A stretch of 64,000 nucleotides of DNA from contig NC_043016.1 in the NCBI RefSeq assembly GCF_006345805.1, positions 3,472,001 to 3,536,000 on the forward strand. Reading direction: 5' to 3'. Shown in pieces: positions 15,351 to 49,520 of the stretch; within the stretch, counting starts at the first letter, position 1, and every line of letters starts with the position of its first letter. Source of the DNA: Octopus sinensis. Lineage: Eukaryota. Under the pieces are notes generated by a model, which saw only the letters and a list, made by a program, of their open reading frames with translations, had not been told where the DNA came from and ran no database searches. Position numbers and translations under genes: made by a program.

Positions 15351-15408
15351 TATCTATATCTATCTATCTATCTATCTATCTATCTATCTATCTATCTATC
15401 TATCTATC
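15351..15408 (+). repeat. (TATC)n array at the 5' junction of Tx1-like copy A
   Basis: ..TATCTATCT|CCAAATGGAGAAG. Confidence 0.95.
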
Positions 15409-16971
15409 TCCAAATGGAGAAGAACTGGAACGAGATAACGAGTAGGGTGGTCACTCTCGCCGGCAATGGGCCGAGGAGGAAACTGTCCCTAAATGGTTGG
15501 GCGGAGGTGGCGAACGCGTACATCGCGTCCATCATCTACTACCGCCTGACCGTCGTGCCTCGTCCCGACCCTACCATCACCAAACTAGAACGCATTCTCT
15601 TCCGCTTCTTGTGGAAAGGATGCGTCCCGATGTTCAGGTGATCCATTTGCTGTCAACACCCGTTAAAAGGAGGGCTGGGCATGCCCTGGTTGATGATGCG
15701 CAGACACGCGCTGAGACTGCGACATCTCCGGCTCTATGTAGACGACAGTGAACAGGTGTGGTCGCCGTGTGTGAGGCACGCTTTCTCGGAGTTCGTTCCA
15801 TGACAGAACTGCAGTCGTGGATCAAAAAGAGGCCGAGGAAGGGGGAATGGCACCGCGAGTGTCATGTAGCTCTCAAGCAACTCTGCCGTCCCGGGTCGAC
15901 CTTGAATGACTTCAACACAACCAAAGCATTCTATAGGTGATTAGTGGAGGGGAGGTACGACGACAATCTTGGGGCGAACCTGGGCGTCGACGAGGAACAC
16001 CTGACCAGCCTGTTTGAGACAACTTTCGGGCCAGGACCCATGGACAACTTCCAGAGATCTCTGGCGTGGCAGTGCTAACGAGAAGCGCTACCCGTTCGGG
16101 ATAAGCTCTATAGACACGGCTCGAGAAACACTGGGCCGACCTGCCTGAGATGCGGGCAGAACGACGAAACCGTGCTGCACGCAATCGTGCAGGGTCCAAC
16201 AATCTCCAACCTGTGGGCTTTTGTCGAACAACTGCTGTCACGTGACGGACGTGTCGGTTTATCAGCCGAGTCTATCGTTAATATCGTCACGCCTCCTTCC
16301 TTCAAACGGGAAGGAAGAGCTATTTTTATCATACTTGTGGGTATGGCGAAAGAATGTATCTGGTGGATGCGCCTGAAAGTATTAGAGACAAACACTTTCC
16401 TCTCTGGTCAATCTCTCATCAACTTCTTCAAGTATCACTTGAAGAGGAAAGTGAGAGTAGAGAGGCAAGTTTTGTCTAGTGAATGTTTTAAAAAAAGATG
16501 GGTGAATGTAGCAAGGATGGCACGTATGAATGACGAAGTCACCTTGATTATGATCCTATGAACCGTAAAAATTAATAGAGAGTTGCTTATTAGTAAAAAA
16601 TATAACAAATGGCGGTGCCCCAGCATGGCCACAGCTCATGAGCTGAAACTGGAAAAATCAAAATCAAAAATCATGTGACTTCATTGACCGAAGTTACCGT
16701 GGTCTTTTCCGTAGGCTTTTCTTTCCACGGTTAAACCTCACCTGTCCTCCCCTTTACACTTTATATTGACATTTCTGTGATAACGATCCCTATTGACCCT
16801 TTTTTCTTTTTCCTTTTATTTTCTATCCCCCCCCTTTTACTTTCCTCTTTCTTTCCTTTTACGATCCCTTTTGATCGAAAACCAAACCCTCTTTTGTATC
16901 CCCAAAAAGAAAAGCTCTACCTTGTAATTTGTCCCGTCTGTGTGCAGCCCTGTGTGGCTAATAAAGAAACA
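15409..16971 (+). mobile_element. Tx1/L1-type LINE copy A, 5'-truncated (late ORF2 plus 3' UTR)
   Basis: Homologous to copies C and F ([41 protein letters not shown]); ends GTGTGGCTAATAAAGAAACA|TATC. Confidence 0.92.
16611..16672 (+). mobile_element. SINE 3'-tail fragment inserted in the copy A 3' UTR
   Basis: GGCGGTGCCCCAGCATGGCCACAGCTC..TGAAACT..(AAAATC)n; absent from the same UTR position in copies C, D and E. Confidence 0.7.
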
Positions 16972-17630
16972 TATCTATCTATCTATCTATCTATCTATCT
17001 ATCTATCTATCTATCTATCTATCTATCTATCTATCTTTCTATATCTATCTATCTATCTATCTATCTATCTATCTATCTATCTATCTATCTATCTATATAT
17101 CTATGTATGTATCTATCTATCTATCTATCTATCTATCTATCTTATATCTATCTATCTATCTATCTATCTATTTATCTATCTATCTATCTATCTATCTATG
17201 TATCTATCTATCTATCTATCTATCTATCTATCTATCTATCTATGTATCTATGTATCTATCTATCTATCTATCTCTCTATCTATCTATCTATCTATCTATC
17301 TATCTATCTATCTATCTATCTATGTATCTTTCTATATCTATCTATCTGTCTATCTATCTATCTCTCTGTCTGTCTGTCTATCTATCTATCTATCTATCTA
17401 TCTATCTATCTATCTATCTATCTATCTATCAAACTATCTATCTATCTATCTATCTATCTATCTATCTATCTATCTATCTATCTATCTATCTATCTATCTA
17501 TCTATCTATCTATCTATCTATCTATCTATCTATCTATCAATCTAGCTAGCTAGCTAGCTAGCTATCTATCTATCAGTCTGTCTGTCTGTCTGCTGGCTGC
17601 CTGTCTGTCTATCTGTCTATCTGTCTCTCC
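16972..17630 (+). repeat. ~600-bp (TATC)n array grading into (TAGC)n and (TGTC)n
   Basis: Direct. Confidence 0.95.
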
Positions 17631-46200: not shown

Positions 46201-49200
46201 ATAGCAATAGAAGGGGATGCAAATGCCTCAAAGACCTGCTCAGACGTTTCCAACTGTCTGACAGGTACCGACTGGACCCACGAATGTGCCAATGTGGACA
46301 TGGAGTAACCGCATCGGGTCGTCCAGATCATACTTAGATAGAGTATTCTGTTGTAGACAATAGATAAAAATAGTGTAGGTTGTCCACAATTTCATATAGA
46401 TCACAAGTTTGTGACTTGTACACTTGACTTAGATAAGACACATAGGCAGGGTCCTGGTTACTGGAAACTGAACGCGTCTTTTACAGCACGACAGGTTTAC
46501 AGGGACCGGACCAGCACATTAGTTAAGAGAGCTTTGACGGGTACCATGATCAACAACAGATGGTGGTATGCCCTAAAAAAAGCAATTAAAGCAGAATCAG
46601 TCAGATACAGTAAAGCCCTAGCATTAGACCGAAATAGAATAGAGGGAGAATTAGTTAAGGTTTTAGAAGAGGCACTTAGAACTGGCATCGCGTCCAACGT
46701 GCTGGCGGCGAGATTGGCCCTCGACCAACACCTCAACGCCAACACGAGGGATGCGTTGTCAGAGCTAGGATGCGTGCTCTGAGGAACGAAGGAGTTGAGC
46801 CGCCCAAGAGGCCCGAGTGGTGGAGACGCAACGAGGCAACAGAGCCACCATCAAGTCTCTTATAGATGAACAGGGGCGCGAATTGCTCGAGCCTAAAAGG
46901 ATGTGTGGGCTTTTCAACAACACTTCACCCGACTGTTTGGGACAAGTGGTGGGTCAGAACGCAGAGTGGACTTTAGTGCCTACCTGCATGCCTTGCCACG
47001 ACTCTCCAGCAAGAGAGGTGGATTCTTGTGAAAGGCCTATCACAGCTGCGGACGTACAGGATGCGATGGTAGGCTGCGCGAGAGACAAGTCACCAGGCTT
47101 GGATGGTCTGCCCTACGAACTTTTTTCATATGCCAGACTGTTTGGAGGCGTCTTGGCAGCTGTCTACTGCAACTGCAGCAAAAAGGGAGTATTCCTGCTT
47201 TTGTAAAGCGAGGAGCAGTGGCACTGATTAAGAAAGACCCAAACAAGGGGGACGTCATAGATAATTTCAGGCCCATCACTCTGCTCAACGCAGATTTGAA
47301 AATTTTGGCCAAGGTGTTAGCCGAGAGGTTGGCGCTTGTCATCAAGAAACTAATCGACAAGGCGCAAACATGCGCCGTACCGGGTAGAAGTAGTATCATG
47401 ACAACCTCCATATGATGCGCGCTACATCATAGACAGGGTAGTTAAGAATCCTGGCATGGGTGGGGCGCTGATCAATTGGATCAATCAAAAGCCTTCGATA
47501 GGGTAGACCATCACTACTTGGAGGCTGTCCTTAAAGCGGCTGGTTTCGGTCCAGTTTTCCGCGGTTGGATCGCTGCCTTATACAGCGCATCCGCTCAGTA
47601 GTTCGCGTAAATGGTCATCTATCCAGACCTTTTAACATCATGCGTTCGGTTGGTCGTCAGGGATGCCCCCTCTCATCGCTGCTGATGTACTGACTCTTGA
47701 GCCACTACTGCGGAAACTGGCGACGCTGAGGGGCATCCCACGAGAGCTGGGATGCGGGAGGAGCGTGTCTGCATACGCGGATGACGTCACCGTCATAGTG
47801 TCGAGCTACGAGCACATCGAGCTGGTCGGCGAGACACTAAAAGAATACGAAGCGCGGTAACGGGAGCAAAAAATTAACCGGGAAAAGTCAGTGGGCTTGC
47901 GGCTCGGCACCTGGAGAAGCAAGCCCATGCCGTCCAACAGCGTCTCCATCGTGGGACGCTGGACGGACGGACCGGTTGTTAAATTGCTCGGGGTCTGGTT
48001 CGGTCCGGACCTCCAAATGGAGAAGAACTGGGGCGAGATAACGACTAGGGTGGCTACTCTCACCCAGAAATGGACTGAGAGAAAGCTATCCCTAAAAGGT
48101 CGGGCGGAGGTGGCGAACGCGTACATCGCATCCGTCATCGAGTATCGTCTGACCGTCGTGCCTTGTCCCGACCCTACCATCACCTAACTGGAACGTTACT
48201 CTTCCGCTTCTTGTGGAAGGGAAACGTTCCGATGGGTAGGCGATCCATTTGCTGTCAACACCCGCTAAATGGAGGGCTGGGCATGCCGTGGTTGATGATG
48301 CGCAGACATGCGCTGAGACTGCGACATCTCCGGCGCTTCATAGAAAACGGTGAACAGGTGTGGTCGCCTTCTGTGCGGCGCGCTTTCCGCAGCTCGTCTC
48401 CTTGGACGAACTACAGTCATGGATCAAGCAGAGACCGAGGCTAGGCGAATGACACCGCGAGTGTCGCGTTGCTCTCAAGCAACTCTGCCGTCCGGGATCG
48501 AAACTTGTGCGACTCCATCACAACAAAGGCATTCTATAGAGGATTAGTGGAGGGGAGGTGCGACGACGAACTCGGGCAGAGTCTGGCGTCGACGAGGAAC
48601 ACCTGACCCGCCTGTTCAGGACAACTTTCGGGCCGGGACCTATGAACAACAACCAAAGATCCCGGCCGGCTGTGCTATCGAGAAGCTTACCTGTTCGGGA
48701 TAAGCTATACAGACACGGTTCCAGACACACTGGACCGACTTGCCGAGATGCGGTCAGAGACGACGAAACCGTTCTGCACGCACTCGTGCAATGTCCAACC
48801 ATTTCAGAACTGTGGGCTTATGCCGAACGGCTGCTGTCACGTGTGGACGAATCCGCCTATCGGCCGAGTCTATCGTCTGAATTGCTCGCCCCTTCCCTCA
48901 ATCGGGAAGGCAAGGCAGTTTTCATCGTACTGGTGGCCTGTGGTGAAAGAAGAATGTGTGTGGGGGACTCAAGCGAAAGGTTTAGAGACAAACACTTACC
49001 TCTCTGGCCAATCGCTCATCAACTTTTTCAAGTACCACTTGAAAAGGAAGGTGAGAATGGAGAGGGAAGTTTTCTCTCGCGAAAGATTCAAAAAAAGATG
49101 GGTGAATGTTGCAAGGATGGTGCGTGCTAGTAACGAAACGATTTTGAGCATGATCCTGTAGATCGTAAAAAAGAAAGAAAAAGAGCATTTTGATCTCATG

Positions 49201-49462
49201 TGGTTATTTCCTCCCTGACTGAGGTTCCCGTGGTCTTTTCTGTAGGCTTTTCTTCCCACGGATGAACCCAATCTTGTTATATCAATGTTTATATCATTAT
49301 TTCTGTGATACACGATTTCTTTTTTTCCTTTTTTTTCCTCCTCTCGATCCCTTTTGATCGCAATCTTACATTTATTTTCTTTTTTTCCACCCTCGAAAAG
49401 AAAAGCTCTGATTTGTATTTGTCCCCTCTGTATTCAGCCCTGTGTGGCTAATAAAAGAAAGT
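43238..49462 (+). mobile_element. Tx1-type LINE copy F, apparently full length (~6.2 kb) and defective
   Basis: Structured leader; ORF1 (44284..44727 VVVDGRRPRCYICGSEQHLK); ORF2 from 45739 (IGSINVRGL, IAISET, LLVGDWNA, AYADDVT); 3' end GTGTGGCTAATAAAAGAAAGT|TATC. Confidence 0.92.
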
Positions 49463-49520
49463 TATCTATCTATCTATCTATCTATCTATCTATCATCTAT
49501 CTATCTATCTGGCTATCTAT
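49463..49520 (+). repeat. (TATC)n array at the 3' junction of copy F
   Basis: Direct. Confidence 0.9.

Follow-up and report, generated by a model that had tools for sequence, protein, structure and literature searches.

What does it mean when several copies of one long interspersed element (LINE) in an octopus chromosome begin and end in the same tetranucleotide microsatellite: is the repeat the target into which the elements inserted, or only a tail that they brought with them? The question is raised by a 64,000-nucleotide stretch of the Octopus sinensis genome (RefSeq assembly GCF_006345805.1, contig NC_043016.1, forward-strand positions 3,472,001 to 3,536,000; hereafter the window, in whose own numbering coordinates are given), where LINE copies lie against (TATC)n arrays. 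We consider it likely that these copies are remains of an extinct LINE family of the L1/Tx1 group, comprising three subfamilies, that integrated preferentially into (TATC)n·(GATA)n repeats and always in one orientation.

Both strands of the window were scanned with a regular expression for at least three perfect TATC units. Seven (TATC)n arrays were found, all on the forward strand and each adjoining the end of a forward-strand LINE copy, and no (GATA)n array was found in the 64 kb; all seven arrays thus read TATC, and none GATA, on the sense strand of the element. They contact four 5′ ends and four 3′ ends. Self-BLAST of the window, together with direct reading of the junctions, placed the copies (A, B, C, D1, D2 and E) of this one repeat family in clusters at 15.4-17.0, 29.5-37.3 and 41.5-49.5 kb. 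The original prediction, made from the sequence of the window, was that each of the three clusters starts and ends in sense-strand (TATC)n; array scan, self-BLAST and junction reading all confirm this, with its coordinates correct to within 1-2 bases. TATC does stand at the outer ends of the clusters, but not at every junction within them: the B/C and D1/D2 junctions have no TATC array, and at each the upstream partner stops inside its own 3′ untranslated region (UTR).

All four 5′ boundaries with non-element DNA (those of A, B, D1 and E) come directly after a TATC array. Three of these copies are truncated at different points of the second open reading frame (ORF2), B at about amino acid (aa) 455, A at about aa 763 and D1 at about aa 1003, and, as had been claimed, none has an element upstream: a relaxed motif search and sensitive BLAST of 1.5 kb upstream of the three arrays detected neither element sequence nor the 3′-end motif. 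In all three clusters the same microsatellite therefore stands at both ends, including those of 5′-truncated copies that have no upstream element. For three random 5′ ends, the probability that every one of them would lie 0-2 bp downstream of a TATC array of the window is ∼3.5e-11. Arrays of (TATG)n and (TA)n are approximately as abundant here as those of TATC, and none of them touches an element end. Because a TATC array precedes truncated 5′ ends with no element before them, the repeat appears to have been the target and not only a tail, so that the proposal of insertion into a TATC repeat is upheld. The truncation points and subfamilies differ and the flanks of the three clusters are mutually unrelated; the insertions were therefore independent events, and association with TATC characterises the family.

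The four intact 3′ ends (A, C, D2 and E) all read CCCTGTGTGGC(T/C)(A/C)AT(A/G)AA(A)GAA(A/G)NN and then TATC, and poly(A) was found at none of the four, again as originally described. This 3′-end motif occurs four times in the window against an expectation of zero. The element ends in a conserved 3′ box (...CCCTGTGTGGCTAATAAAGAAA, AATAAA included), which is followed by two variable bases and then by (TATC)n. These two bases differ from copy to copy (CA, GA, CT, GT; sites 16970-16971, 37270-37271, 43106-43107 and 49461-49462), are more variable than the surrounding sequence, and are TC in relatives. The phase of the repeat is fixed at the 3′ junction in all four copies. It varies at the 5′ junctions, where the arrays end ...TATCT, ...TATCTA, ...TATC and ...TATCTA, with 1-2 nt of microhomology. 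A fixed 3′ phase together with a variable, microhomologous 5′ phase is as expected for target-primed reverse transcription. The junctions, like the anatomy and domain content of the copies given below, are shown by the sequence itself.

Copy A (15410..16971, + strand, as are all the copies and arrays that follow) is 5′-truncated and retains the ORF2 C-terminus with three stops and one frameshift, the 3′ UTR and the 3′ box (...CCCTGTGTGGCTAATAAAGAAACA); its 5′ junction has a 2-nt (CT) microhomology. Directly 5′ of it lies a (TATC)13 array (15357..15409, perfect part 15357-15408) within a compound (TC)n(TA)n(TATC)n microsatellite, and 3′ of it an array of ∼150 units (16972..17574) that is degenerate at its far end. 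Copy B (29482..31569, end approximate) represents a divergent subfamily, with ∼79% nucleotide identity to the other copies, and follows a (TATC)33 array (29350..29481, perfect part 29364-29479) that has unique sequence before it; also 5′-truncated, it has its ORF2 stop at 31453-31455 and 3′ UTR homology to ∼31569, lacking the last ∼225 bp and the tail. Copy C (31570..37271, start approximate) is near full length, with an ORF1 remnant bearing a CCHC knuckle at 32292-32861, an ORF2 at 33518-36877 that covers endonuclease, reverse transcriptase (RT) and zinc-binding C-terminus through six frameshifts and five stops, and a 3′ box ending at 37271, where a pure (TATC)31 array begins (37272..37394, perfect part 37272-37391).

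In the third cluster an array of ∼58 units (41259..41493), likewise with unique sequence before it, leads into copy D1 (41494..41989), which runs from the ORF2 truncation point into the 3′ UTR, lacks a 3′ end and is fused to D2 (41990..43107). The latter is 5′-truncated, has an intact 3′ box (...CCCTGTGTGGCCCATAAAGAAGCT) and is 94.5% identical to D1 over their overlap. A (TATC)32 array (43108..43237, perfect part 43108-43235) adjoins both D2 at its 3′ end and copy E (43238..49462) at its 5′ end; E is the full-length, 6.2-kb member of the third subfamily (∼80% nucleotide identity), with a 5′ UTR, an ORF1 remnant at 44284-44727, an ORF2 at 45739-49152 carrying many frameshifts, and a 3′ box ending at 49462, followed by ∼14 units of TATC (49463..49522, perfect part 49463-49509). 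Over aligned columns, identity among A, C and D is 82-88%, reaching 91% in BLAST segments; for B and for E, nucleotide identity to the other copies is ∼70-80%, and the subfamilies are ∼20% apart. All copies in the window are inactivated.

The family is an L1/Tx1-group LINE of the type that has an apurinic/apyrimidinic endonuclease (APE). A conceptual ORF2 of ∼1,140 aa was rebuilt by frameshift-tolerant alignment; Pfam places Exo_endo_phos on aa 6-216 and RVT_1 on aa 504-726. The C-terminus, read from the stitched copies, contains the Cys/His motif C(P/L)RCGQ(S/N)DETVLH..VQCP, and zf-RVT (PF13966) was already annotated on the related proteins P0001, P0002 and P0003. Among solved structures the best ORF2 relative is human L1 ORF2p (1e-49 over aa 4-858), with R2 proteins at 1e-14. 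The APE motifs N, E, Y, GDxN, D and DH align to the L1 endonuclease (L1-EN), and L1-EN entries are the top 12 PDB matches (template modelling score, TM, 0.72-0.80) of an AlphaFold model of the APE (predicted local distance difference test, pLDDT, 79.6). The best match is an L1-EN variant with a Tx1 hairpin, and the TRAS1 endonuclease ranks far lower. The APE of this family, like that of its Argonauta relative, does not keep the customary QETH and YAPN motifs, and both contain PCLPRMGG as a lineage-specific insertion.

ORF1 bears on the finer placement. Pfam at its default threshold gave no match on the ORF1s of the window. With relaxed thresholds zf-CCHC matches weakly on the window and Argonauta ORF1s, and it is above threshold on the ORF1 of a more distant family (locus L005, below); Transposase_22, the L1 ORF1p domain, matched none of the window, Argonauta and L005 ORF1s. 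A CCHC knuckle without Transposase_22 in ORF1 is a defining feature of Tx1. The element had been called Tx1-type: membership of the L1/Tx1 group stands, on the match to L1 ORF2p, the L1-EN fold and the CCHC-bearing ORF1, and the narrower Tx1 label is probable only. Names of relatives do not separate Tx1 from L1, as none of 10 clusters carries a name. L1-Tx1 elements are among the most widespread LINE types of molluscs, where Tx1 is one of the clades found by RT phylogeny (PMC10294476), and in the repeat annotation of Octopus vulgaris families labelled ‘L1-Tx1’ stand beside others labelled ‘L1’ (PMC13282606 supplement). Elsewhere in the window (54651-54911, − strand) lie 260 bp of a related, degraded ORF2 C-terminus, with 44% aa identity to the Argonauta protein P0002 and neither a 3′ box nor a tail that can be recognised.

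The nearest proteins are those of Argonauta hians, those of a cuttlefish, and those encoded on ENA, JGI and NCBI contigs. Sister lineages in Argonauta and in metagenome contigs have the 3′ box GTGGCTAATAAAGAAA in common with the octopus family and end in TCTATT or (ATT)n, that is, in an element-encoded terminus ...GAAATCTAT(T) or in an (ATT)n tail. Their copies are inserted next to earlier tails, and their target duplications of 16-17 bp have an AT-rich start able to pair with the terminus. A nearly intact full-length Argonauta element (locus L001; ORF1 of 476 aa, ORF2 56% aa identical to copy E) has the 17-bp target duplication TATTTTTAAAATTTGTA on both sides, from which it follows that the lineage integrates by ordinary target-primed reverse transcription and that this relative is not microsatellite-specific. 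In a JGI contig (L002, 68% aa identity) and in two copies at the Argonauta locus L010, the same 3′ box is followed by (ATT)n.

L010 also holds a short 5′-truncated LINE 3′ fragment with (ATT)3 upstream and (ATT)17 downstream, lying behind the end of another element. Besides LINEs, the locus contains three tandem tRNA-like short interspersed element (SINE) units and many dispersed ones ending in GTTCGGCCCTTGTGGCTAATAGAGAAATCTAT(T). A full-length LINE ending in (ATT)4 lies directly behind the SINE units, so that SINEs and LINE are arranged head to tail behind each other's tails. Together, the features at 2700-3365 and 9172-9205 of L010 make up a partnership of LINEs and SINEs in which the sister lineage has an (ATT)n tail. 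Unrelated flanks follow this same box, GTTCGGCCCTTGTGGCTAATAGAGAAATCTAT(T), in the Argonauta SINEs; TCTAT is therefore part of the element itself. The tRNA-like SINEs of the window have a matching 3′ box. An RNA hairpin in the box was considered and rejected, RNAalifold giving two pairs, no covariation and ∼0 kcal/mol for 19 LINE and SINE ends; the box is therefore conserved as primary sequence.

Two further loci mark the range of the relatives. L005 (positions 1-14183; ENA ERZ21867824) holds a more distant family (∼40% aa identity) as a head-to-tail array of 6.4-kb units that are 98.5% identical and joined end to start, without poly(A) or microsatellite, their 3′ end being AGAAATAAAGCAGACTAGAAGGT. 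The closest outside relative is protein P0147 on L009 (ENA ERZ4233750, a 1191-bp short-read contig), with 78% aa identity to copy A, a value within the range between subfamilies of the window. For the closest proteins (P0121, P0003, P0110, P0039 and P0147), the contigs are short and end before the tail. At two other cephalopod loci, L001 and L006, (TATC)n arrays occur without an adjoining LINE, so such arrays can pre-exist as targets. The (AGAT)17 array of L006 was examined as a candidate for a TATC-flanked element and rejected, the adjoining 654-aa ORF being a RING/B-box-like host gene.

A course of integration can be proposed, in which we infer three things: that the RNA has a repeat tail, where the nick falls, and that tail and target pair. 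The transcript would end in the 3′ box and a few UAUC units, a tail that may have arisen by expansion of the ancestral TCTAT terminus encoded in the sister lineages. The APE of the ORF2 protein (ORF2p) would nick the GATA strand of a genomic array, and the freed ...GATA-3′OH would pair with the UAUC tail and prime reverse transcription; with such pairing the 3′ junction would always open with TATC. Second-strand cleavage and 5′ joining would then take place higher in the array, at positions that vary, and would often truncate the 5′ end and leave 1-2 nt of microhomology. With every insertion a further TATC array would arise at the 3′ end of the new copy, so that tails of earlier copies could receive later ones and clusters would build up; the tail of D2 does hold copy E. 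Two origins fit the fusions of B with C and of D1 with D2: insertion into the tail of an older copy with loss of target DNA, or template switching. A fusion of U6 and SINE sequences at 430-741 of the window suggests template switching by the reverse transcriptases at work in this genome.

What selects the array is a separate matter. The original prediction placed the specificity in an APE that recognises the tetranucleotide, a claim that we find unsupported: the termini of the sister lineages and their insertion behind earlier tails indicate pairing of RNA tail and target at least as much. Target choice was probably set by such pairing together with some nuclease preference. In its strongest form the specificity would lie wholly in the APE, which would nick GATA/GATA, while the RNA ended in ...GAAA without UAUC and the TATC on both sides was target DNA; we regard this as unlikely. 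The single phase of the 3′ junction in four of four copies suits it, and is equally compatible with an RNA-templated tail, from which a fixed phase is expected just as much as from a GATA-reading nuclease. The two variable bases before TATC look like untemplated additions at a repeat-less RNA end; their variability exceeds that of a purely RNA-templated junction and mildly favours such an end. Sequence-specific APEs are established for TRAS1 and R1Bm, the TRAS1 endonuclease structure is among the fold matches of the APE model, and the atypical QETH and YAPN motifs and the PCLPRMGG insertion could be read as signs of a specialised nuclease. Against all this stand sisters with very similar APEs, whose elements encode TCTAT or (ATT)n at the end and whose insertions lie at AT-rich sites or behind tails of earlier copies.

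Still less probable is that the family only seeded microsatellites, (TATC)n being its 3′ tail and the upstream arrays being chance neighbours or tails of lost copies. LINE tails are known to seed microsatellites (PMC6050309), an array follows every intact 3′ end, all TATC arrays of the window are element-associated, and the array between D2 and E is indeed the tail of an upstream copy. The arrays before A, B and D1, by contrast, are preceded by unique or compound-microsatellite sequence with no element remnant or 3′ box, a coincidence for which the chance value was given above, and seeding predicts unrelated 5′ flanks where those of A, B, D1 and E are all TATC arrays. We give very little credence to an origin without any insertion preference, through passive accumulation in a region rich in repeats and low in recombination, local rearrangement or an assembly artefact (misassembly or unequal crossing-over via microsatellites). 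The window is AT-rich and very rich in microsatellites, the family makes up about a quarter of 35 kb, and it has been proposed that Drosophila Waldo-A/B gathered passively near CA repeats (PMC3812793). However, the junctions are base-exact and strand-specific, only TATC takes part even though (TATG)n and (TA)n occur just as often, the three clusters have unrelated flanks, and the copies differ in truncation point and subfamily.

Preferential insertion into TATC arrays therefore remains our favoured explanation, and several observations besides the two variable bases weigh against it. The evidence consists of only three or four independent insertions, all within 35 kb of one window, and of occupied sites only. 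A LINE has been regarded as microsatellite-specific when the target is found in the flanks of >20% of its genomic copies (PMC4494074); all copies of the window have it, and they stand for only three or four events. The sole family-level relative outside the window, on L009, ends ∼25 nt before the expected 3′ end, as a short-read contig would if a repeat came next. A protein-pattern scan of metagenome contigs gave no confirmed locus with further copies, the exact 3′-end DNA pattern had no occurrence in metagenome contigs or in genome contigs, and an exact look-up of the 398-aa ORF of copy B returned no record. As the L001 copy is not microsatellite-specific, the property would be young or narrow, and as all copies of the window are dead, no activity can be inferred from them.

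Only a handful of LINE families are known to home to microsatellites, and the mechanism is poorly understood (PMC3812793). Within the Tx1 clade these are Kibi in (TC)n, Koshi in (TTC)n and crocodilian families in (TTCC)n/(TTTC)n (PMC4494074, PMC3812793); elsewhere they include Waldo in (ACAY)n and Mino in (AC)n, both of the R1 clade, and Dong in (TAA)n (PMC3812793). Like the octopus family, Kibi, Koshi and the crocodilian Tx1 elements are APE-type LINEs of the L1/Tx1 group that lack poly(A) and occupy one kind of microsatellite in fixed orientation (PMC4494074, PMC3812793). They differ in having polypyrimidine targets and vertebrate hosts (teleosts for Kibi and Koshi), against (TATC)n and a cephalopod here. 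Dong, of the R4 clade and reported from a mollusc, the snail Biomphalaria, shares microsatellite specificity with Waldo, Mino and the octopus family (PMC3812793); all three differ from the latter in clade and target repeat.

A parallel from outside microsatellites is offered by TRAS1 and SART1, R1-clade elements of Bombyx that also insert in an orientation-specific manner into a short tandem repeat, the APE nicking at a defined position of the unit and the RNA 3′ end taking part in initiation. They are of another clade, have poly(A) tails and target (TTAGG)n at chromosome ends, and the TRAS1 endonuclease stands below all L1-EN entries as a match to the octopus APE. Dong, for its part, uses a restriction-like endonuclease. 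Human L1 is the closest relative with a solved ORF2 and APE fold and resembles the octopus family in 5′ truncation, junction microhomology and U6 chimeras formed by template switching; unlike it, L1 has a poly(A) tail, a TTTT/A nick and a Transposase_22-type ORF1. Repeats as tails are known from snake CR1-L3 and Rex elements, in which a repeat of 4-5 nt forms the LINE 3′ tail and has spread through the genome (PMC6050309). Their AATAG/ATAG tail is close to GATA, and the TAA 3′ tail of the I factor is named beside the AATAG of snake CR1-L3 as a case of seeding. In the snake elements the repeat is at the 3′ end only and insertion into the repeat is not reported, whereas the octopus family has it at the 5′ end too.

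No LINE specific for TATC, GATA, ATCT or TCTA was found in the searchable literature, Repbase and Dfam lying outside that search. Cephalopod repeat papers list L1-Tx1 families and do not mention their targets. Judged on the searchable papers, the family adds a new target repeat and a new host phylum to the microsatellite-homing LINEs, and its mixed-tetranucleotide target would widen the known range. Comparison across the cephalopod lineage, whose sisters have different tails and whose SINE partners share the 3′ box, would help to tell nuclease specificity and tail-target pairing apart. The family is also relevant to the making and breaking up of microsatellites by LINEs in cephalopod genomes, which are very rich in repeats, and site-specific LINEs attract interest as templates for inserting genes at chosen sites.

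A broader idea, which we put forward tentatively and with less conviction than preferential insertion itself, is that throughout this octopod LINE/SINE lineage the integration site is largely chosen by pairing of the RNA 3′ repeat with the nicked target. If so, a change of tail would re-programme the target, TCTAT(T) leading to AT-rich sites and earlier tails, (ATT)n to ATT arrays and (TATC)n to TATC arrays. This would amount to natural, partly RNA-guided LINE targeting, and to a self-reinforcing generator of tetranucleotide microsatellites.

Other repeats of the window were recorded alongside the LINE family. At 430-741 (+ strand), a full-length U6 small nuclear RNA sequence (RF00026, 108 bits, 430-535) is directly fused to a tRNA-like SINE (538-741) whose 3′ end, TTTAGCCCCTTGTGGGTAGTAAAGAAAT, resembles the LINE 3′ box; the whole looks like a U6-SINE chimeric retrocopy made by template switching, by analogy with mammalian U6/L1 chimeras. 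The same SINE recurs at 2200-2440 (+) and at 7225-7427 (−), the latter copy with a 16-bp target duplication, AATTCTTTTTATCATT, and neither adjoins a TATC array; to judge from the 3′ box, both would have been mobilised by a related LINE without TATC specificity. Two (TATG)n arrays of ∼780 bp each (9710-10489 and 19078-19852), whose unit differs by one base from the LINE-associated TATC, have no family copy adjoining. Another tRNA-derived SINE of ∼450 bp, unrelated to the LINE family, contains a (TA)n(TG)n stretch in its interior, is AG-rich at its 3′ end and is found at 3804-4256, 18234-18673, 26938-27373 (−), 61940-62279 and 9253-9429 (−).

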